From the sequence record LR745206.1: a stretch of 64,000 nucleotides of DNA; one strand, 5' to 3'. The position numbers were made by a program, and so were the translations under genes. Of the stretch, positions 1,113-60,380 are shown one piece after another. How positions within the stretch are numbered: the stretch's first letter is position 1; every line of letters begins with the position of its first letter. The notes under the pieces were generated by a model that saw nothing but the letters and a program-made list of their open reading frames with translations, ran no database searches and was not told the origin of the DNA.

Positions 1113-3038
1113 TTATTTTGTTTCTATTTCATTTTCTAGATATCTTATAACTACAGCTTTTTTCTCATCATTTATTTTTCTTGAATGACTTATCCAAACT
1201 ATGGCTTCTTTCCAATCACTATCTTTGAAGTCTTTAGAATATCCTTCTTCTTTCAAGAAAGAAAGTATATCTAATCTAGCGTATTCTGCTGACCATTTAA
1301 TTATCATGTTTCTACCTCTTTCGTCAGTTAATTTACCACCATATTTTAGAAGTAATTTAAATGCTCCGATATAGCTTTCACCGATCTCATCTCTACTTGA
1401 CCAACTACCTTTACAAACCCTTCTAAACGGTAAGAAATTGTTGAAGTTTGGATCAAGACCAGCTTTTAAACAGTATTCTAAAGCATCCATATCATGTAAT
1501 ATGTTATTAAATACATCACCAGTTATATCAGACCCATTACTAACAAGTAACTTAATCATCTCTAAGTTTTTAGCTTTTGATATAGGCGCGTCAGCTCCTT
1601 TTTTTAGATTTGGAGATGCCCCTAATTGTAGAATTGTTTTAACTTTCTCATAATCATCTTCTTCAACAGCATTTGTTAAACAAACACCACTATTTTTATT
1701 GATGTTAGCTCCATCTTCTTTTACATATCTAATTATCTCAGCAATTGTTAACCCTTTTCTAACAATTTCTCTTTCAGCTATCTTAGCTCTTTCCCTTCTC
1801 TCAATTTCTTCTCTAGTCATTGGTTTTAATTGAGCCCAAAGATCTTCTTTTATACCATATTCTCTTTGCCAATTACTCAATGTTCTTTGTATTGAACTAG
1901 AAACACCAGCATCATTCTTAGCATGTGCTGCCTTTATCCTTTGACCAGGTTCTATTGTTATACCAATAACTGACATATTATCATATTGTGGTATATTGAA
2001 GTTATAAATGTAATATTGTTTATTATTATGATTTGATACATAGTTTTCCCATTGACTATTATAATCTTTAATACAGTGTCTTGTATGTCCATTTAACATT
2101 TGGTTAGCTGGAAATGATTTAACTTCTATAATTAATACCCCATTTTCATCAAATACTATATCAGCACCAGCATATCCAAATTTTTCATTACAGTTATTTA
2201 TCTTATCATAAAATGCTAATATATCAGAGTTCTCTGATGCTTTTAAGAAGTTTTGTGCTGCTCTAATAAATTCACCAATAGTTGTATAACGTCTTAATTG
2301 ACCAACATATCTTTTTACACCCTCGATAGTTCTAACCTCACCAAAAAAAGATTTCCATAAACCATCTCTCTTTTCCTCATCAATTGTACCATCTTCTTTT
2401 TTACCCATCTCATTAAAGGCTCTAGCAACCTCAGCAAATTGTTCTTTAATACCTTCTGCTGCTCCACTATAATCTCTTTTCAGTTCACTTGTTAATTTAT
2501 CAACAATCTTTTTAACCTTTCTATAATCTTCTAACTTATCAAGACCATCTACTAAAACCTCGGAATTATTTGTGATATTTGGATCAATGAAATGTAAGTC
2601 AAATTTCTTAGGTAAGTGATTTAATAAATCTCTATATTCTACCATATTATTATACATGGATTGTATCTCTTCAATAGTTGTCATTTCAACGTAATACATA
2701 TAAGTGAAATTATACAACCAACCAATATTATCTTTAAGTATTTCTCTTATTTTTAGAAATTCTGGATCTCTTTCGATTTGATGAATTATCTCAGGTGATA
2801 TTTTCATACCCCTGATCATACCTTTTATTTCTTTTACTTGATCTTCGTTAAAATCATTAATAGTTATTGATCTTTTTTCACCATGTTCTAATTGAGCCGC
2901 CAACTCACCTTTGATAAATCCAAGTTCTTCTGCAGCTTTTCTTAATAGGTATCTTTCCTTTAGAAACTTTTTTGATTTATCTAAGTTTTCGTTTAATGGT
3001 TTAATTCCCAAAAAGTGATTATACTTATGTAACTTCAT
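1113..3038 (-). CDS. ankyrin-repeat protein with capsid-targeting-like N-terminus
   Basis: C-terminal repeats GANIN..CLTNAVEEDDYEKVKTILQLGASPN, LEMIKLLVSNGSDI, LEYCLKAGLDPN, FKLLLKYGG; N-terminus MKLHKYNHFLGIKPLNE. Confidence 0.75.
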   Translation of the reverse strand: MKLHKYNHFLGIKPLNENLDKSKKFLKERYLLRKAAEELGFIKGELAAQLEHGEKRSITINDFNEDQVKEIKGMIRGMKISPEIIHQIERDPEFLKIREILKDNIGWLYNFTYMYYVEMTTIEEIQSMYNNMVEYRDLLNHLPKKFDLHFIDPNITNNSEVLVDGLDKLEDYRKVKKIVDKLTSELKRDYSGAAEGIKEQFAEVARAFNEMGKKEDGTIDEEKRDGLWKSFFGEVRTIEGVKRYVGQLRRYTTIGEFIRAAQNFLKASENSDILAFYDKINNCNEKFGYAGADIVFDENGVLIIEVKSFPANQMLNGHTRHCIKDYNSQWENYVSNHNNKQYYIYNFNIPQYDNMSVIGITIEPGQRIKAAHAKNDAGVSSSIQRTLSNWQREYGIKEDLWAQLKPMTREEIERRERAKIAEREIVRKGLTIAEIIRYVKEDGANINKNSGVCLTNAVEEDDYEKVKTILQLGASPNLKKGADAPISKAKNLEMIKLLVSNGSDITGDVFNNILHDMDALEYCLKAGLDPNFNNFLPFRRVCKGSWSSRDEIGESYIGAFKLLLKYGGKLTDERGRNMIIKWSAEYARLDILSFLKEEGYSKDFKDSDWKEAIVWISHSRKINDEKKAVVIRYLENEIETK

Positions 3039-3043
3039 ATAAA

Positions 3044-4558
3044 TTATTTTTCTTTTCTTCCGTGGAATCTATGATTCTCGTTTATTCTTTCTATTTCTTT
3101 AAGGTAAATCTCTTTACCCTCTCCTAAAAATTCACTTAATTCTTTAACCTTGTCGAAATCACCTGCATCAAGTGCATCATCGATTAGACTTTGAATCTCT
3201 CTCTTTGATAATTGAGAATAATCTGATTCTCTTTCCATTGACTTTTGTCTCATTTCATCCTCGAATGAAAGTTCTTTTTCTTTCCCTGGTTCAACTGTAT
3301 CTCCTGATTCATCATCATTATATTCCTCTTCTGGCTCATTATAGTCAGAATTTGGTAAAGCTTCACCCAATTCATACTCATCTAGTGACTTTATTAACCC
3401 TTCAACCATCTCATTAACTTTTGTTCTAGCCTCTGGTGTTTCTAATAATATTTTCTTAACCAATGGTAAAAATTCATCTACTGGTAAAGCATGTAGCATA
3501 CCATAGAAATGCTCTCTTAGATTTGGGTATTTATCTATATCAGGAGCTTCATTAACGAAATCTCTTATATCTGCTGCTAGTTCAGGTCCATATCTAAATT
3601 CTTCTGCCTCATCATCCATTGATGATGTGTTCATCATTACCAACTCAGCAGTTCTTTTATCTTCTGGTATACCTGCCGCTGCTATTAATTCATAAATACC
3701 TTTTACTGTTTCGTGTAATAACATTGGAAAGTCAACACCTCTAGCTTTAATTATTGGATTTCCTGATGATAATAATTCTTGTATATCTTCATCTTCATTA
3801 TCTATATCAGCATCTTCATCTTCAAGTCCTTTTAGAACTTTGTCTGATAAATCCTCTTCTTCTTTAGCATCTGGCCATTTAACTGAACATGCTCCAGCCA
3901 TTCCTTCTGGTGCTTGCTCCATCATATCACCTTTAACATCAACTGGTATTAACCAATCCATTTTATCAGCTAATTCTGTCAACCTCATCCATATTCTATG
4001 TGCTTCTTCACCTTCTCTCTCACCAAGAATAGCTTTTAATTCATTCTTAACCTCAGGCATTGCTAATATCCTTTTTGTATTCTTAGCTTCTCCTTGTGTT
4101 ATATTGTTAATTATCTTTCTCTTATCAACTTCTTTTTTAATCTCTGGATCATTTAATAATTGGAAAGAAGGTGGTTCACAATCTTCACATTCTTCATCCA
4201 TAAAGTCTTTGACTGCTCCTGGTCTAACTATTTTAATATCCAAATCTACATTATCTAATATAGATCCATATTCTTGCATTATTATTCTTTCTGCTAATTC
4301 TTCTAAAGCATCTTCATTTCCTCTTACGAATTGCATAGATTGTTGCATTATCTCCATCATTTCCCTACCAACTTGCATAGTCTGTTGTGGACGACCTCTT
4401 CTAGGATCTTCTTCTCTTGGTACATTAAGTCTTTGTCTAGCTCTACGCTCAACATCACTTAGATATTTCTTCTCATCTCTATCAGAACCTTCACCAGGTA
4501 TACCTGAGCTACCTTTAAGAGATACTTCTTCATTCATAAAATCTTTGAAATTCTTCAT
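3044..4558 (-). CDS. acidic hypothetical protein, putative head-packaged
   Basis: 504-aa ORF starting MKNFKDFMNEE; LLHETVKGIYEL segment. Confidence 0.65.
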   Translation of the reverse strand: MKNFKDFMNEEVSLKGSSGIPGEGSDRDEKKYLSDVERRARQRLNVPREEDPRRGRPQQTMQVGREMMEIMQQSMQFVRGNEDALEELAERIIMQEYGSILDNVDLDIKIVRPGAVKDFMDEECEDCEPPSFQLLNDPEIKKEVDKRKIINNITQGEAKNTKRILAMPEVKNELKAILGEREGEEAHRIWMRLTELADKMDWLIPVDVKGDMMEQAPEGMAGACSVKWPDAKEEEDLSDKVLKGLEDEDADIDNEDEDIQELLSSGNPIIKARGVDFPMLLHETVKGIYELIAAAGIPEDKRTAELVMMNTSSMDDEAEEFRYGPELAADIRDFVNEAPDIDKYPNLREHFYGMLHALPVDEFLPLVKKILLETPEARTKVNEMVEGLIKSLDEYELGEALPNSDYNEPEEEYNDDESGDTVEPGKEKELSFEDEMRQKSMERESDYSQLSKREIQSLIDDALDAGDFDKVKELSEFLGEGKEIYLKEIERINENHRFHGRKEK

Positions 4559-4812
4559 TATTTATTGACATATTTTTTTATGTCTTCACCCTTATCATTA
4601 AGGAGACTTATGAATCTATCAACAACATCCTCAACGGTTGCCTTTGGTGCTGGATTTACTGATGGTTTATCTCTTCTTATTGGTGAAGGTCTACCAGGTC
4701 TTGTTCCTGGTTTCACACCAGGTGTTGTAGTAGGAGCTGGTTTAGTTTCAACTTCTTGACCACCCATCACAAATTCCTCATTGAATTTTTCAAACTTTTT
4801 TAGAAATCTCAT
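4558..4812 (-). CDS. Pro-rich small protein, putative head-packaged
   Basis: MRFLKKFEKFNEE start; late motif TTAATATATA on minus strand at 4837-4846. Confidence 0.7.
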   Translation of the reverse strand: MRFLKKFEKFNEEFVMGGQEVETKPAPTTTPGVKPGTRPGRPSPIRRDKPSVNPAPKATVEDVVDRFISLLNDKGEDIKKYVNK

Positions 4813-4836
4813 AAGATTAGTTATTTTTATATGATT

Positions 4837-4903
4837 TATATATTAAAATTATAATTCTATTTTTGTGATTATCTTAATTTATTACAATTGAATTTAATAT
4901 ATA
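4837..4903. promoter_or_regulatory. divergent pair of putative late promoters
   Basis: TTAATATATA on minus strand (4837-4846) and on plus strand (4894-4903), each just upstream of a start codon. Confidence 0.6.
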
Positions 4904-4908
4904 TCTAA

Positions 4909-5988
4909 ATGAAGTATATTAAACCATATAGTAATTTTTCTATAAATGAAGCGGTTGGTCTAGCTGAGGCTACACTCATCTATTCTGAATTTATACTAGA
5001 TAAAACAAAATTTTACTTTGATAAGTTTCTTAAAATTGGAGATAGAAAGTTCGAACAAAATAAATCTTATGATCTTTCAAAAAGAAATGATATCATTCTT
5101 AATGATTTGTGGGATAAATATCCTGTTTTGAAAATGAATATTACTTTTAATTTTGAAAAGCAAAGTGATGTTGATTTTAATGAAAGATTCCCAAAAACTT
5201 CTAAAATAAAGGGATTCACAACAACAGGAGCTTGCTATAATATAGTTGAGAATAGATCAAGAGATAAATCTTATCTATTACCAAATATAAACAAAAGAAC
5301 AAAGCATACAATTTTTTTAAAATTAGAAGTTGGTGGGATTATACGTGATAGTTTTGATGAAAACGAGGATTTCCTATTAGAAGTTGAGGGCGCTATAATA
5401 CATGAGTTAAATCATGCTTATGAGGGTTATATGAGGTTGATTAAAGGAAGTGGTCAAGTATCAACTGATTTAACATTCGCAACAGATAATAATCGAAGTA
5501 AAGTGAAGAATGAGATATGGAAAGTATGGAGGGATAAAATAGGATACTATCTATATACTAGTGAGAGACATGAGTTAAATGCCATGGCACAAGAAGCATT
5601 TCCTTATGTTAAGAAATATGATCCATCTGAGATGAGGAAAAAATGTCCATCTTGGAGAACCGCAGAAGAAATGTCTAAATTTAATGTTGTTGATTTTAAA
5701 AAAGAAATCACAAAAATGATAAATAAATATTACTCAGGTGTCTATCCAGAATTTATAGTTAGCATACTTAATAGACTAAAGAATGGGTTGGGTAATGAAT
5801 TAGGTGTTAATAGAGAAGAATCGGTTGATATGTTAGAAGATTCCCCTTCTTTGAATGGGCAAGAAATATATAATATGGATATAGATAGGTTTTTGTTATA
5901 TGTTCAAAAAAGGGTTAATAAGGCTGGTGATAATCTTAAAAAGAAAATAAATAGACTATACTCTATAAAAGATAAGGATTTAAAATGA
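4909..5988 (+). CDS. putative zinc metallopeptidase (HExxH), putative head-packaged
   Basis: IIHELNHAYE plus downstream ERHELNA; N-terminus MKYIKPYSNFSINE. Confidence 0.55.
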   Translation: MKYIKPYSNFSINEAVGLAEATLIYSEFILDKTKFYFDKFLKIGDRKFEQNKSYDLSKRNDIILNDLWDKYPVLKMNITFNFEKQSDVDFNERFPKTSKIKGFTTTGACYNIVENRSRDKSYLLPNINKRTKHTIFLKLEVGGIIRDSFDENEDFLLEVEGAIIHELNHAYEGYMRLIKGSGQVSTDLTFATDNNRSKVKNEIWKVWRDKIGYYLYTSERHELNAMAQEAFPYVKKYDPSEMRKKCPSWRTAEEMSKFNVVDFKKEITKMINKYYSGVYPEFIVSILNRLKNGLGNELGVNREESVDMLEDSPSLNGQEIYNMDIDRFLLYVQKRVNKAGDNLKKKINRLYSIKDKDLK

Positions 5989-6420: not shown

Positions 6421-6996
6421 ATGAAGAAGTTTTCAGATTTTGGTGGTAAAAAACCAGTTAAAAGAATAAATGAGGCTGATGAAACAGTAGATTTTCAACC
6501 TGTTTCGGGTCAAGATGGTGCTCCTGTTGTAGCTAACCTACCAGGAAATATACAAATGCCTGGTGAGGAACAAGAAGAAAAGGAACAAGAAGGAGAAATT
6601 GCTGGTACTGTTGAATCTACTGAATGTTCAAATTTCTTTTCTAAATTATTCGAAAGTAGAGAGATGGCTCATGTTTATCACTTACAAGTTAGGGGTGATG
6701 AAGGTTCTTATGCAAAACATATGGCTCTTGGTGGTTATTATGAAGGGGTTCTAGATTTTATTGATGAGATAATAGAAGTTTATCAAGGACAATATGGTAT
6801 CATTGATGGTTATGATATAATCGATACGAAAGATACTAAAACAAAAGATCCAGTTGCTTATTTTGAGGAGATGGCTGAATATATTAAAAATGCTAGAAAA
6901 TGTATTAATGAAGAAGATACACATTTACATAACATAGTTGATGAGATAGTAGCTCTTATTTATAAGACACTTTATAAATTAAAATTTAACAAATAA
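6421..6996 (+). CDS. ferritin/Dps-like four-helix protein (DUF5856-like)
   Basis: AHVYHLQ..SYAKHMALGGYYEGVLDFIDEIIEVYQGQYG pattern; late motif at 6386-6395. Confidence 0.6.
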   Translation: MKKFSDFGGKKPVKRINEADETVDFQPVSGQDGAPVVANLPGNIQMPGEEQEEKEQEGEIAGTVESTECSNFFSKLFESREMAHVYHLQVRGDEGSYAKHMALGGYYEGVLDFIDEIIEVYQGQYGIIDGYDIIDTKDTKTKDPVAYFEEMAEYIKNARKCINEEDTHLHNIVDEIVALIYKTLYKLKFNK

Positions 6997-6999
6997 TAA

Positions 7000-7026
7000 A
7001 AAACCCAACTTAATCAGTTGGGTTTT
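7000..7026. terminator. bidirectional intrinsic terminator
   Basis: AAAACCCAACT-TAATC-AGTTGGGTTTT between convergent genes. Confidence 0.75.
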
Positions 7027-7237
7027 CAATTTTAAATATATTTTCGATTTTTCGTTTCCTTATTAGATTTGTAGTTCTAACAAATCCATAATAACTATTA
7101 TTAACCATTTTTGTTGCATATCTACTCTTCATTGATAATGAATTGAAGCTACTTGATAATGTTGAAATACTTTCACTAACAACATAGGGCATCCAAACTA
7201 GACCAGCTTCCAATTTATTTGATTTCTTTCCCAACAT
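7010..7237 (-). CDS. small protein: major capsid C-terminal-like fragment plus RxxKIxxIF tag
   Basis: GKKSNKLEAGLVWMPYV..MKSRYA resembles gp23-family GYKGPNEMDAGIYYAPYV..FKTRYG; ends IRKRKIENIF. Confidence 0.7.
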   Translation of the reverse strand: MLGKKSNKLEAGLVWMPYVVSESISTLSSSFNSLSMKSRYATKMVNNSYYGFVRTTNLIRKRKIENIFKIENPTD

Positions 7238-7367
7238 TGAATATTTTTTCTATTTTTTCTTTCCTTATAAGTGGTCTGAACCAAAAATTTGGCATCCATA
7301 CGTCCCTACCATAGTTATTATTGGATGGTCCGAAAACTTTAATATTTGGATCTGGAGCTACAAACAT
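7215..7367 (-). CDS. 50-aa tagged micro-protein not in ORF track
   Basis: hand translation MFVAPDPNIKVFGPSNNNYGRDVWMPNFWFRPLIRKEKIEKIFNVGKEIK; fills the gap between co-oriented genes. Confidence 0.65.
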   Translation of the reverse strand: MFVAPDPNIKVFGPSNNNYGRDVWMPNFWFRPLIRKEKIEKIFNVGKEIK

Positions 7368-40965: not shown

Positions 40966-42123
40966 ATGTCAGTTTGTGGACAATCATTATTCGGAAGTGG
41001 TAGTAATTACATAAAAGTAGCGAATGGATCTTTTTTAGCTATAGAAGGATCTACGATAGCTGAATCATTATTATTATCTGATTTGAGAATGCCTTATAAG
41101 CAATTATTAAAGGGTAGAATAATATTAAAAGCTGGTCAAGAAGATTTTCTATTAAATCATCTAGGTTTAGGTGATAATGCAACATTTTTAGCTATTAAAG
41201 TAACTTATAATCCAAAATCTGTAATTGAAGAGGATAATTATATACAGTGGTCTTTTTATGATGATGTTGAGAGAGTTAATACAATAGCTCAATTATTGGT
41301 ATTAACTGGTAATTCATCTAATAGAATACCTCAACTTTGGCTAACAAATCCAAATAGTAAATATCCAGTAACACTAGATGTTATGGTTGCTGTAATTGAT
41401 GATAATACATTCTTTGAATATAGACCAGTTGTTTATTTTACTGCTCCGGTTACATTAGAAAATGCTGTTTATTCAGGTCCTTATAATACTTCACTTGGTA
41501 CTAATTTTGGTATAACCATACCAAGTATTAATAACTTTGTTGGATATGATATTAATGATTTGAGAACAGAGATTGTCGATCATGTTGTTGAGTCAAATGG
41601 TTTATTATTGAGTACAACTGCTAGTAATTATTTACTTTATGATATTGATAGTAATCCAATTAATTCATTTACACTATCTGGCACATATTCTATGTTATTT
41701 GATATAACAGATTCATTGAATAATTCAATTGATCCAGCTGATAATGTTGAAATAATATACAATGCAACATACACACCGGTTGTTTTCTTTACTCCTGATG
41801 TTTATTTGATAGGTTCTACTGCATCACCAGTTAATACATTATTAGGTGATACATTTGGTGCAACAATATCATTAACTATGTCAGTTTATGGTGGTACTGT
41901 TAGTGTGTTGGATTTAGCTGGTGTTTTAGTTGACCATGTTGAAGAAGCTAATGGTGTTACTTTCTCAGCTACAGCTAGTAATTATATATTATACGATTAT
42001 TCAAATCTAGTTATTAATGGTATAACAATATCGGGTACTTATTCATTAGGATTTAATATAACAGATTCATTTGGTACACTTGATCCGAATAAAATAGTAG
42101 GCGTGTCATTCACAGGAGTATGA
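40966..42123 (+). CDS. putative structural protein with duplicated C-terminal domain
   Basis: two copies of PVV.FT..VDHV.E.NG..TASNY.LYD..SGTYS..F.ITDS; late motif 40934-40943. Confidence 0.6.
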   Translation: MSVCGQSLFGSGSNYIKVANGSFLAIEGSTIAESLLLSDLRMPYKQLLKGRIILKAGQEDFLLNHLGLGDNATFLAIKVTYNPKSVIEEDNYIQWSFYDDVERVNTIAQLLVLTGNSSNRIPQLWLTNPNSKYPVTLDVMVAVIDDNTFFEYRPVVYFTAPVTLENAVYSGPYNTSLGTNFGITIPSINNFVGYDINDLRTEIVDHVVESNGLLLSTTASNYLLYDIDSNPINSFTLSGTYSMLFDITDSLNNSIDPADNVEIIYNATYTPVVFFTPDVYLIGSTASPVNTLLGDTFGATISLTMSVYGGTVSVLDLAGVLVDHVEEANGVTFSATASNYILYDYSNLVINGITISGTYSLGFNITDSFGTLDPNKIVGVSFTGV

Positions 42124-43082
42124 TAATTAAAAAGTATATAAAATTTATTAAAGAAAATTTAATGCAATTTAATTCATTAGGTGAATGGGTTGACTCATTA
42201 TCTGATGATGATTATGTTATGAATATTGTTAATAGATATTTGAAAGATATTGATCCGGATATTGAATTGGAAAATGCGGTAAATCTTTTGGATGATAATG
42301 AACAAGCTGATATTAGATCACAGATATCTGAATATTTAGAAAAAGGTATTCAGGAAAAAGATCCAAATGTATTAGCATCCACTGAAACTGATATATTAGA
42401 AAATGTTCAAGAAATAACTGTTGCTGGTAAAGGAGTATTTAACTCTTTTCTTAAATCACTAACTGCCCTTGGTCAAAAAGAATCTAAGCCAAATTATGAT
42501 AGATGTCCAGAAGATTTTTTAGTATTTTATCACTATCAAAATCTAAATTCTAATGATGTTAAGGTTGTTTTTAGTAGATTTAAATCACTTTTGAGATATT
42601 CTGATATGATTGATTATGGTAAGAATGAAGTTAGTCTTTATTTTGGTATTAAATGTGATGGTCAGTTTGAATATGGTATATCTTATGATAGTTTATCACC
42701 AATGGGTCAATTTAAATTATCACAATCATCTATTAAGTGGTTAGTTCAATTGGAATCTAAATCATCTAGATCACTTAAAAAGGAATTGGTTAACTTAACA
42801 TACAATGATATATTATTATTTGGTAAGATTAAAATGGATATGAAGGATTTTAATCCTGGTTATCATGAGAAGAGATCTTATCCTACTATAACTGATAGAG
42901 TTATCTCATTTGGGTATTATGGTGTTGGTAGATGGGATAATGGTAAATTGGATGAGGGTGAATATATGAATATTAAAAATAATTTTACTACTTGGATTCT
43001 TACTAAGAAATGGGGAAGTAAAGTTTTGATAAGTGTTAAGCCTCAATCATTTTGGTTATACATACATATAAAATTGAAATAA
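42120..43082 (+). CDS. hypothetical protein, putative head-packaged
   Basis: MIIKKYIKFIKEN start. Confidence 0.65.
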   Translation: MIIKKYIKFIKENLMQFNSLGEWVDSLSDDDYVMNIVNRYLKDIDPDIELENAVNLLDDNEQADIRSQISEYLEKGIQEKDPNVLASTETDILENVQEITVAGKGVFNSFLKSLTALGQKESKPNYDRCPEDFLVFYHYQNLNSNDVKVVFSRFKSLLRYSDMIDYGKNEVSLYFGIKCDGQFEYGISYDSLSPMGQFKLSQSSIKWLVQLESKSSRSLKKELVNLTYNDILLFGKIKMDMKDFNPGYHEKRSYPTITDRVISFGYYGVGRWDNGKLDEGEYMNIKNNFTTWILTKKWGSKVLISVKPQSFWLYIHIKLK

Positions 43083-43083
43083 T

Positions 43084-43374
43084 ATGAAATATTTAAGAAA
43101 ATATAATGAATCAAATGGAGAGCAAGATTTAGATTTTGTTTTAGCTAAGATTAAGGAAGAATTTCCTATTGATAAGGTTAAAGAAACTTATGATAAAGAA
43201 GTTGATGAGTGGTCAGAAGATTACACTAATAGTGGTAATGGTGAGGCACAAGACGTTATCTTAAATCAAATGATTGGATGGTTCGAGTTGAAACATTCTA
43301 GCCTTAGTGATGAGTTATTTGAAGAAGTTTATAATAAACTACAAGAGGAATATGAATTCCTAAACATTGATTAA
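43084..43374 (+). CDS. acidic small protein, putative head-packaged
   Basis: MKYLRKYNES start. Confidence 0.65.
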   Translation: MKYLRKYNESNGEQDLDFVLAKIKEEFPIDKVKETYDKEVDEWSEDYTNSGNGEAQDVILNQMIGWFELKHSSLSDELFEEVYNKLQEEYEFLNID

Positions 43375-43406: not shown

Positions 43407-43880
43407 ATGACTCAAAGTTCTAAAGAAGATATTTTTAAAAAATGGGCACCTATTATAGAATCTATGGGTGTTACTGGATCAAAAGCAGATTGGATGTCTC
43501 ATTATGCTGAAATGCACTCTATCAATGAGAATAATATACAAATATCATCAACACAATCTACTTCTAATTTTCCAAATTTGTTACCAATCGCTAAAAAGAT
43601 TGCAGCTCAAACAGTTGGACTAAATTTAGTAGCTGTTAAACCAATTGGTGGTAATTCAACTGATGAGTTAGAAAGAATAAAAAGTGAGATTAAATCTGAA
43701 AACCGCGATAGAAAAATCGATTCTATTACAGATGATAAAGAATTTGAGGAAATGAAGGTTGAGGATCATCCAGACTATGAAACTGGTTTACCTAGTGGTA
43801 AATTATTTTACATGGATTATCAATATGGATCTACACCAACACATAAGAAGACAAGAAGAAGTAAAAAGAAGAAGAAATGA
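43407..43880 (+). CDS. major capsid N-terminal-like fragment with internal tag
   Basis: MTQSSKEDIFKKWAPIIE versus T4 gp23 MTIKTKAELLNKWKPLLE; LVAVKPIGG..PSGKLFYMDYQYG; NRDRKIDSI inserted. Confidence 0.75.
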   Translation: MTQSSKEDIFKKWAPIIESMGVTGSKADWMSHYAEMHSINENNIQISSTQSTSNFPNLLPIAKKIAAQTVGLNLVAVKPIGGNSTDELERIKSEIKSENRDRKIDSITDDKEFEEMKVEDHPDYETGLPSGKLFYMDYQYGSTPTHKKTRRSKKKKK

Positions 43881-44131
43881 AGAAACTTAAAATGCAAAAA
43901 GATTATTGGTTTCCTAGTCCAGATTATGTTAATAGATTTGGTCGTAAAAGAAGTATTGCTAAAATATTTGACCTTGAGTATGACGAATCTGATTTAGTAA
44001 ATTCCTCACAAATTCATTGGAGTAGTACCACTGCTCAACCAAGAATGAAATTTGTAATACCTATTGGTGATATGAAAGATAAACCAAGTATTGCTAAAAG
44101 AATCAAGGATTTGATAAAAAAATTCAAATAA
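43877..44131 (+). CDS. portal-like fragments flanking a tag
   Basis: QKDYWFPS, GRKRSIAKIF, RMKFVIPIGDM..KDLIKKFK. Confidence 0.6.
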   Translation: MKKLKMQKDYWFPSPDYVNRFGRKRSIAKIFDLEYDESDLVNSSQIHWSSTTAQPRMKFVIPIGDMKDKPSIAKRIKDLIKKFK

Positions 44132-44160
44132 GGTAGTCATGTGGGTATAATATATACCCT

Positions 44161-44490
44161 ATGATTAAGATTTATTTAATTTGTGCTGAAATAGGTGGTG
44201 AGAAGATGTATAAAATAGGTTATACAAAAAGAACAATTGAACAAAGAATAAAGGAATTTAAGACTGGTAATGCGTCCGAGTTCACTATAATAGATTCTTT
44301 TCAATCAGATTGGGGTACTAAAATAGAGGCACAATTACATAAGAGATTTAATCATAAAAAGGTTAATGGTGAGTGGTTTAAGTTAGATGAATCTGATATA
44401 AATAAGTTTCAAGATATGTGTAGTTTAATACATAATAATTTAGAAATTGTCTCTAAAACGACATATTATTTAGATAGAGGAGACTTTTAA
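44161..44490 (+). CDS. GIY-YIG-like T5orf172/MUG113 nuclease
   Basis: YKIGYTK..RIKE..IEAQLHKRF..GEWF. Confidence 0.8.
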   Translation: MIKIYLICAEIGGEKMYKIGYTKRTIEQRIKEFKTGNASEFTIIDSFQSDWGTKIEAQLHKRFNHKKVNGEWFKLDESDINKFQDMCSLIHNNLEIVSKTTYYLDRGDF

Positions 44491-48840: not shown

Positions 48841-49275
48841 ATGGGTTTCAATAAGAGATATATTAAAAAGGAAATGATATTGGATAATGTTAATAACATT
48901 TCTTATATAAAAGGATTAGTTAAGGCTGATGCTTTGATAATGGATAATTGGTCTGTGAAATTCTTTGATAACTTCAATTTTAAATATGAAACATATAATA
49001 AAATAAGAGAAGGTATAAAAGAAGATACAATATTTGATTCACATCATAATAATGTCCTTAATCATGAAAATTATAAAGAATTATTTAATTTATCAAATGT
49101 CCTTTTGAACCTTAAAACAGATCCAGCTTGGATTGATATTTTATTAACAAGTGATATTTTAAAAGAACTCGATATGGATTTTGTAGAAAAACAAAACCCA
49201 CCAGAAGATATAAGAGGTAGATTTAACGAATTGGTACCTTATTTTATTAAAGTAATAGAAGATTATTATGGATAA
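48841..49275 (+). CDS. hypothetical protein
   Basis: 144-aa ORF starting MGFNKRYI. Confidence 0.6.
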   Translation: MGFNKRYIKKEMILDNVNNISYIKGLVKADALIMDNWSVKFFDNFNFKYETYNKIREGIKEDTIFDSHHNNVLNHENYKELFNLSNVLLNLKTDPAWIDILLTSDILKELDMDFVEKQNPPEDIRGRFNELVPYFIKVIEDYYG

Positions 49276-49987
49276 GAATAAAAATTATTATGATATACTT
49301 GGTGTTATACATAAATCAGAACCAAATCAAATAAAAAAAGCTTATTATAAATTATCATTTATACACCATCCTGATAAAGGAGGAGATCCTGTTGTATTTG
49401 GTGAAATGACCGAAGCTTATGATGTTCTTTGTGATGAAAAATCAAGAGAAGAATATGACTCAAAAAGTAAATATGGTAAAAACTATGATGAATATTTTGA
49501 GTTGTTTGATATAAAGGTTGATTTCACATATGAAGATAGTAAAGATCATTTAGAAAAATTCAAAAAAAATGAAATAAATAATATTCAATTAGAAATTGAC
49601 GAAACATTTAATGGTAAAATCGAGTATGAAAGATGGGTAAAGTGTAAATCTTGTGATGGTAGTGGAAAAGATATGTCTGGAAAGATAGTTATCAGGGATA
49701 ATGATGGAAATGTTGTTAAGACATTTGATGCTGAGGATGGTTGTGATTTCTGTGAAGGAAGTGGTAAGAGTTATGATGGTTCTGATTGTTCATTTTGTGT
49801 TGGTCAGGGAAAAGTTGGACTAAAACCATGTGATAATTGTATTGGTAATGGTAGAATTATGGGTAAACAAAAATTATCTGGTATTAAATTAGTTGGTGAT
49901 GAAACTAAACTAGACACAATGGGTCATTTTTCTAAGAATGGTGTTGGATATTTACTTTTATTAAAAAAATCTGAAAAAAATTCATAA
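49268..49987 (+). CDS. dnaJ: DnaJ-family co-chaperone, C-terminally short
   Basis: NYYDILGV..HHPDKGG J-domain; four CxxCxGxG repeats. Confidence 0.85.
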   Translation: MDKNKNYYDILGVIHKSEPNQIKKAYYKLSFIHHPDKGGDPVVFGEMTEAYDVLCDEKSREEYDSKSKYGKNYDEYFELFDIKVDFTYEDSKDHLEKFKKNEINNIQLEIDETFNGKIEYERWVKCKSCDGSGKDMSGKIVIRDNDGNVVKTFDAEDGCDFCEGSGKSYDGSDCSFCVGQGKVGLKPCDNCIGNGRIMGKQKLSGIKLVGDETKLDTMGHFSKNGVGYLLLLKKSEKNS

Positions 49988-60078: not shown

Positions 60079-60196
60079 TTATAATTGGTTAATGGGTAAC
60101 TTACAAGCTGCTTTAAGAGCAGCCAGACCTAATATGAAATCAAAGGTGAGGAAGAATAAAATAAAAAAACTATTATATGAACTTATCGGAAATTAG
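60071..60196 (+). CDS. 41-aa tagged micro-protein not in ORF track
   Basis: MNSYNWLMGNLQAALRAARPNMKSKVRKNKIKKLLYELIGN; fills operon gap. Confidence 0.6.
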   Translation: MNSYNWLMGNLQAALRAARPNMKSKVRKNKIKKLLYELIGN

Positions 60197-60380
60197 AACT
60201 TATGATTATGATAGAAAATCACCGAATGTGTTTTATATTTTAGATTATCCAAATTTGATAAAAATTAATGAGTTAACTAAAGAAAAGCGTGATATTATAA
60301 ATAAAATGAGTAATAACATTAGGTTTTTAAGAATACGTATGAATCGTAGAAATAAAATAAATAGAATTTTTGAAAAATAA
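60177..60380 (+). CDS. tagged hypothetical protein
   Basis: ends NRRNKINRIFEK. Confidence 0.65.
   Translation: MNLSEIRTYDYDRKSPNVFYILDYPNLIKINELTKEKRDIINKMSNNIRFLRIRMNRRNKINRIFEK

Follow-up and report, generated by a model that had tools for sequence, protein, structure and literature searches.

The analysis presented here shows that a huge uncultured phage carries a conserved 84-residue gene built from two pieces of its own type of portal protein, arranged in swapped order around a short peptide tag and translationally coupled to a paralogue of the N-terminus of the capsid protein. The gene lies within a 64,000-nucleotide window of LR745206.1, an unannotated 634,780-bp uncultured phage assembly in which window position 1 corresponds to record position 248,001. 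The GC content is about 28%, and a 642-kb sister genome, LR756502.1, is syntenic in this region at about 72% DNA identity; both are among the very large metagenomic phages with T4-type head genes. A first-pass annotation had proposed from the sequence alone that two portal segments lie in reversed order around a tag, and that the ORF overlaps a capsid-like gene by ATGA to form a two-gene head-protein-mimic unit. Each of these structural statements survived testing, whereas any functional mimicry, in the sense of binding what the portal or capsid protein binds, is inferred only. The features discussed below are collected in the following table.

Table. Coordinates of the coupled gene pair, its constituent segments, and related features of the genome. 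Positions are those of the window unless marked as record positions of LR745206.1.
Feature	Position	Strand	Description
Upstream partner gene	43407-43880	+	157 aa; paralogue of the N-terminal ~118 residues (propeptide plus N-arm) of the phage's own Gp23-type major capsid protein (MCP), with an inserted charged segment (ENRDRKIDSI...) and a basic tail (HKKTRRSKKKKK)
Permuted portal-derived ORF	43877-44131	+	84 aa, pI 9.9; segment A - tag - segment C; MKKLKMQKDYWFPSPDYVNRFGRKRSIAKIFDLEYDESDLVNSSQIHWSSTTAQPRMKFVIPIGDMKDKPSIAKRIKDLIKKFK
Start/stop overlap	43877-43880	+	ATGA shared with the upstream gene (translational coupling)
Segment A	43886-43915	+	Residues 4-13, LKMQKDYWFP; own portal 325-334 (LPYNKQIWFP), about T4 gp20 328-337, just before the inner clip loop
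Tag	43943-43969	+	Residues 23-31, RKRSIAKIF; S26-F31 invariant in orthologues; predicted helix spans residues 20-30
Segment C	43976-44128	+	Residues 34-84; own portal 256-305, about T4 gp20 260-309: end of stem helix alpha5, first clip beta-strand (KFVIPIG) and clip helix alpha6
C-terminal 23 residues	44060-44128	+	Residues 62-84 (PIGDMKDKPSIAKRIKDLIKKFK); positional equivalent of T4 gp20 288-311
T5orf172/MUG113-domain gene	44161-44490	+	Downstream neighbour (Pfam 2.8e-19)
Own portal (L006:1715-3448)	record 193127-194860		577 aa; PF07230 at 2.7e-57 over model positions 6-431
Tag carrier	7013-7237	-	Capsid protein C-terminus, matching MCP 494-539 (E 1.9e-5)
ORF overlapping the preceding carrier	7218-7367	-	Looks similar to the capsid protein C-terminus by eye only
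Tag carrier	record 460438-460686		Scaffold 14-residue repeats (E 5e-15)
Tag carrier	record 83154-83390		PolB motif A, DFASLYPS (E 1e-3)
Tag carrier	record 482039-482176		Sheath N-terminus

The 84-aa ORF is a real protein-coding gene under purifying selection. Overall, about a dozen orthologue clusters were recovered; a search of 5.8 billion proteins returned ten of these, comprising the window's own protein and nine orthologues of 82-99 aa at 54-81% identity, and their alignment has 27 invariant columns concentrated in KDYWF.S, R..SIAKIF..YD, W.S.T.QP and IP.G. Orthologues occupy the same place on a 44-kb ENA contig, on 312-483-kb IMG/VR contigs, on a 355-kb contig and on a 17-kb JGI contig, although a scan of IMG/VR aimed at expanding the family returned only 2 loci. 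Pairwise dN/dS is 0.23-0.86 and mostly below 0.6 (mostly 0.23-0.59), compared with 0.11-0.39 for the upstream partner, and the gene evolves faster than that partner, with 81% versus 96% identity to the closest relative (locus L002; L numbers denote loci).

Single-sequence scans of Pfam and PHROGs found nothing for either the target, which gave no Pfam hit at E<=1, or its partner, and a PDB profile search with the target family found only non-significant cofilin hits and no portal. Profile-based comparisons nevertheless place the portal resemblance beyond chance. A profile search of 1.84 billion representatives recovered three proteins (P0145, P0142 and P0144; E 6e-4 to 2e-5) that match Pfam Portal_T4 (PF07230), with P0145 (3e-16) and P0142 (4.7e-10) scoring above the family cut-off and P0144 (0.0026, 17 bits) scoring below it. 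P0145 is simply a fragment of a true portal, and the large repeat proteins P0134, P0137, P0143 and P0146 found by the same search were judged on inspection to be spurious repeat-summed matches. We then aligned eight T4-type portals, from five huge phages, Tenacibaculum phage PTm1, Chryseobacterium phage MA9V-1 and Salmonella phage Melville, and compared this alignment with a profile of 10 orthologues by hhalign. Segment C matched the portal at E 3.6e-7 (probability 93%), or 5.2e-8 when the C-half was searched alone, while segment A was recovered as a separate hit at E 1.3e-3, or 4.1e-4 when the N-half was searched alone. Because segment A follows segment C in a portal, the order of the two in the target is reversed, and placing the C-half before the N-half gave one collinear alignment to portal 268-334 in which the score rose from 50 to 66 and E fell to 5.6e-10. 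The match of segment A rests on only 10 residues, and its hhalign probability is low on its own (19-35%); it is credible mainly because, in HMM searches against each portal separately, it always falls at the YW(F/L)P site after the main match, and because a native-order relative links the two segments. Among 2,911 ORFs of at least 35 aa from the whole phage, read piecewise, the portal is the best non-self hit of the family HMM (E 5.5e-5).

The native-order relative is a 153-aa ORF in the sister genome (locus L001), two genes downstream of the equivalent slot, which matches the portal core with 44% identity to portal 280-338 (E 7e-17). This ORF matches the target in two pieces in swapped order, with target 21-66 aligning to its residues 43-88 (E 3e-6) and target 2-13 aligning to its residues 133-144 (E 0.003), such that the portal reads C-hairpin-A, the L001 153-aa protein reads tag-C-hairpin-A, and the target reads A-tag-C. 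Only 3 clusters of the L001 153-aa type were found. The 156-aa P0142, a free-standing gene between unrelated genes in another huge-phage contig (L010), reads C-hairpin-A-C with YWLP in segment A, and looks like the tandem-duplicate intermediate expected for circular permutation by duplication and truncation.

The phage's own portal aligns to T4 gp20 with an offset of about +4 in this region, which allowed us to interpret the segments using the T4 gp20 cryo-EM structure (PMC4493910). In that structure the stem comprises residues 255-278 and 359-377, and the clip comprises residues 279-358, made of three strands and helix alpha6, forming the exposed site where terminase gp17 and later neck protein gp13 attach. 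N291, M292, R295 and K296 at the clip tip face gp17, R338 and K342 form the inner clip loop, and a 24-residue peptide, 288-311, is reported to bind gp17 and inhibit packaging (PMC4493910). The target protein ends where alpha6 ends, and the two-stranded hairpin that separates segments C and A in the portal is missing. The region equivalent to the inhibitory peptide is, however, the least conserved part of the protein.

The tag between segments A and C is helical in the AlphaFold2 model and did not align significantly to the portal's second stem helix (portal 359-377; BLASTP E 2.0, with hhalign placing it elsewhere at E 0.19), so that an origin of all three modules from the portal is not supported. 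In relatives the tag recurs in other arrangements as KRRRRKISNIF, DRMRSIAKIF, SRKRKINQIF, SRRRKICKIF, DRKNKIKKIF and SRRMKISKIF. An HMM built only from instances in other genomes found 6 ORFs in this genome at >=10 bits, compared with 0 in the reversed set and 0, 0 and 0 in three shuffled sets, and 14 ORFs at >=8 bits, compared with 0 reversed and 1, 3 and 0 shuffled. A few of the 14 carry no recognizable tag on inspection, leaving roughly ten genuine carriers. Nearly all of these are ORFs of 36-93 aa with the tag within a few residues of the C-terminus, whereas in the target the tag is internal. The two larger tag-bearing proteins (187 and 319 aa) have no Pfam domain. Codons differ freely among 15 tag copies while the peptide pattern is kept, indicating conservation at the peptide level and not in a DNA repeat. 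Some carriers also hold recognizable fragments of capsid protein, scaffold, sheath or PolB, and an 81-aa ORF of locus L012 likewise matches the sheath N-terminus at E 1e-5. By tblastn, neither this sheath-like ORF nor the carrier at window 7013-7237 had relatives in the phage collection searched.

The upstream 157-aa product aligns with residues 8-118 of the phage's own capsid protein (41% identity, E 7e-22), which itself matches Pfam Gp23 at 1.8e-26, and the shared motifs are KKW.P..E.MGV.G...DWMS.YAE.HSINEN ... NLLP.A.KIAAQT.GL.LVAVKP. A PDB profile search with the partner family had found T4 gp23, N-terminus to N-terminus, at only E 0.31, and was superseded by this direct comparison. The partner belongs to a very widespread family of 364 clusters, mostly above 55% identity and without annotation. 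In all four loci where the target family is present, the partner ends in a basic tail (HKKTRRSKKK...) and the two genes overlap, by ATGA or by 14 nt. An overlap is kept in relatives but in different frames, with an offset of -1 in the window, L002 and L021 (ATGA) and +1 in L003, L008 and L022 (14 nt), which favors termination-reinitiation coupling over a programmed-frameshift fusion. Where the partner lacks the basic tail, the slot holds other mosaics: 76 aa with a sheath-like N-terminus, NYWLP, tag and collagen-like tail in L021; 65 aa with a sheath-like N-terminus and tag in L001; 123 aa with YadA-like repeats in L004; and P0139 in L012, followed by an ORF with sheath N-terminus and tag.

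Together, these data establish the ORF as an expressed-type, conserved gene of 'Mahaphage'-like huge phages that arose from a T4-type portal gene, retaining the stem end, clip strand, clip helix alpha6 and YWFP strand in circularly permuted order, with the hairpin lost and a family-wide tag inserted. The function of the pair can only be inferred in the absence of binding, expression or virion data. Our best-supported guess, which is tentative, is that the pair acts at the portal vertex as a microProtein-like competitor or adaptor. In this model the product is largely unfolded alone and would present the clip strand and helix to a clip partner (terminase or neck adaptor) or to portal subunits, folding upon them by strand addition, while the tag helix would dock it to a partner shared by the other tag-bearing mini-proteins. 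The effect would be to time or block packaging or neck attachment, either in the phage's own assembly line or in that of a co-infecting relative. Compatible with folding on binding, the low-confidence AlphaFold2 model (pLDDT 65, pTM 0.26) shows only two helices, the tag and the alpha6-like helix, with no autonomous fold, and Foldseek against the PDB found no match. Several results speak against this reading: the poorly conserved alpha6-like helix and clip tip, which form the terminase-contact region in T4, resemble the phage's own portal tip poorly (IGDMKDKPS versus IKGLSRQRA); the family HMM scores higher on portals of other huge-phage lineages (21-33 bits) than on its own portal (9-18 bits); and the slot variants without the clip piece suggest that the A-plus-tag module may matter more. 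Considered as a whole, this explanation carries somewhat less than even confidence, and part of the likelihood remains unassigned to it or to any of the alternatives below.

Among the alternatives, a packaged head protein is possible but unlikely. The two products could be carried into the prohead by their capsid-like and portal-like segments, or by the tag acting as a capsid-targeting signal, to end up as basic internal or DNA-associated proteins like the T4 internal proteins. Both products are basic or have basic tails, the partner keeps the capsid propeptide region that contacts the scaffold in T4-type heads, and other small ORFs of the genome carry the capsid propeptide segment GMGAV...GSGDV, which also occurs in a protein next to the portal of Tenacibaculum phage PTm1. 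Conversely, judged from sequence alone and without proteomic evidence, no protease-site pattern is conserved, as the partner's INE is KNE in most homologues, and the tag shows no similarity to T4-type gp67/gp68.

A more speculative and improbable possibility is that huge phages encode a system of mosaic mini-proteins, each stitched from the most conserved peptide segments of essential proteins (portal clip, capsid N- and C-termini, sheath N-terminus, scaffold repeats, PolB motif A) and carrying a common docking tag (IRKxKIxxIF), which would work as molecular mimics, either as decoys against host immune sensors or as dominant-negative poisons of the assembly and replication machines of co-infecting rival phages. 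The narrower anti-defense decoy reading, in which the mini-proteins soak up or mis-assemble sensors that recognize portal, capsid or polymerase while the tag recruits a common helper, is somewhat less likely still and purely inferential. It is consistent with the mosaic strings of conserved segments, with the faster evolution of the target than of its partner, and with its greater likeness to foreign portals; however, the portal and terminase sensors of the Avs family probably recognize whole folds rather than 30-50-residue pieces, and no defense-related neighbor was found, albeit without a PADLOC run. A decaying duplicate without function of its own is very unlikely. Several other tag-bearing fragments do look lineage-specific, as with window 7013-7237, which has no homologue in the 642-kb sister phage, and the orthologue in L003, L008 and L009 has its C-terminal helix in another frame, but the invariant columns across clusters down to 54% identity, the intact ORF of constant length, dN/dS below 1 and the conserved coupling all argue against decay. 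Chance resemblance of a lysine/isoleucine-rich ORF in an AT-rich genome, suggested by the empty single-sequence searches and the spurious repeat-protein hits, is largely refuted by the profile-profile scores and their improvement on re-ordering, the rank of the portal in the proteome, the transitive links to PF07230 and the L001 153-aa paralogue.

To our knowledge such proteins are new, as neither gene matches a Pfam or PHROG family and literature searches found no description of them. Relative to T4-type portal proteins, only about 60 of 433 family positions are present; the clip hairpin, wing, crown and tunnel loop are absent, the protein cannot form a portal, and the phage has a separate intact one. 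The synthetic gp20 288-311 peptide is equivalent in position to the last 23 residues, but the target is a natural gene product in which the sequence at the clip tip is not conserved. As with microProteins and dominant-negative paralogues, the protein is small and derived from an interaction region of a larger oligomeric protein encoded in the same genome, although that concept comes from eukaryotic regulators and no titration of the parent has been shown here. Classical circular permutants such as saposin/swaposin or DNA methyltransferases share the cyclically shifted order, but here a fragment of about 60 residues rather than a whole domain is affected, in combination with insertion of a tag. 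None of these covers a natural, permuted, tag-bearing portal fragment coupled to a capsid-protein fragment. If the product does bind what the portal clip binds, it would be the first natural, phage-encoded portal-clip mimic, a built-in regulator or weapon aimed at the packaging motor or neck attachment, as well as a clean example of circular permutation of a protein fragment. The recurrence of the tag further suggests an unrecognized class of small phage proteins, with the tag as a handle on their common partner, and our results give an evolutionary origin to two ORFan families.

Finally, the T5orf172/MUG113-domain gene immediately downstream is a fixed neighbor in all relatives examined (L001-L004, L008, L021 and L022). 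Its role as a mobile homing endonuclease that scattered gene fragments is unlikely, because its position is fixed across distant relatives.

Further instances of the same peptide tag were found within the window and elsewhere in LR745206.1. Two overlapping small ORFs in the window end in LIRKRKIENIF and LIRKEKIEKIF, and the longer of the two matches the C-terminus of the phage's capsid protein (MCP 494-539, E 1.9e-5), whereas the shorter looks similar by eye only. No homologue of the longer ORF was found in the 642-kb sister phage. A third ORF in the window, ending in ...RMNRRNKINRIFEK, is a weaker candidate tag carrier (7.3 bits). Outside the window we identified additional tag-bearing mini-ORFs, three of which carry recognisable fragments, namely PolB motif A (DFASLYPS), scaffold 14-residue repeats, and a sheath-like N-terminus.

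Coordinates of additional features in the window, in the remainder of LR745206.1 and in related loci
Sequence	Coordinates	Strand	Feature
Window	7013-7237	-	Tag-bearing ORF, 75 aa
Window	7218-7367	-	Tag-bearing ORF, 50 aa
Window	60177-60377	+	Weaker candidate tag carrier, 67 aa
Window	42120-43082, 43084-43374		Neighbouring genes with similar N-termini (also relatives)
Window	44132-44160		Spacer before the T5orf172 gene
Window	49268-49987		DnaJ homologue, 239 aa
LR745206.1 record (outside the window)	83154-83390, 460438-460686, 460628-460831, 482039-482176, 598645-598755, 608318-608455, 440158-440358		Further tag-bearing mini-ORFs
LR745206.1 record	93266-93517, 554787-555284		Small ORFs with capsid propeptide segment
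LR745206.1 record	129209-129580	-	ORF similar to the middle part of the partner, 124 aa
LR745206.1 record	232803-234341		Family-B DNA polymerase ORF, 513 aa
L007 (locus containing the capsid gene)	3747-5870 (record 198546-200666)		Protease- and scaffold-like ORF, 707 aa
L003 (related locus)	6479-6700		Orthologue with early stop
L008 (related locus; also L009)	2923-3238		Orthologue with early stop
L003	10409-12184		DnaJ-domain gene with intein
L019 (Prevotella phage Lak-B5)			Portal region

Two small ORFs of LR745206.1 contain the capsid propeptide segment GMGAV..AQP..LAG...GSGDV, and the same segment occurs in PTm1 ORF299, next to that phage's portal. It may be a shared prohead-targeting or processing signal. 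A further ORF is similar to the charged middle part of the 157-aa partner (HRESKIDSIL...EYKEF, HMM E 2.8e-5) and is a second paralogue of that segment. Next to the capsid gene, a large ORF has an N-terminus weakly similar to the prohead protease (Peptidase_S77, below the cut-off) and contains many copies of a 14-residue repeat (YSEYLAENLDKNI), an arrangement that looks like a protease-scaffold fusion.

In the lineage represented by L003, L008 and L009, the orthologue stops after ...IPVGEKSKKNYVG, and the expected C-terminal helix (SIKSLLRKYK) lies in another reading frame, next to an A-rich stretch, which could reflect a real frameshift, recoding, or an assembly error. Closer to the gene itself, the short spacer before the T5orf172 gene holds a 7-bp inverted repeat (GGGTATA/TATACCC) that overlaps a TATAAT-type promoter-like match (TTCAAA-17-TATAAT). 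Neighbouring genes in the window and in relatives start with similar N-termini (MIIKKYIKFIKEN and MKYLRKYNES, with MRYLKPYKKFIEN elsewhere).

The family-B DNA polymerase of LR745206.1 appears split, with one ORF holding the exonuclease domain and the start of the polymerase domain through motif A, and with a helicase as the next gene. Under genetic code 11, the portal ORF of Prevotella phage Lak-B5 is broken into short pieces. In the relative L003 the DnaJ-domain gene carries an intein (Intein_splicing, Hom_end), which is absent from the DnaJ homologue of the window.
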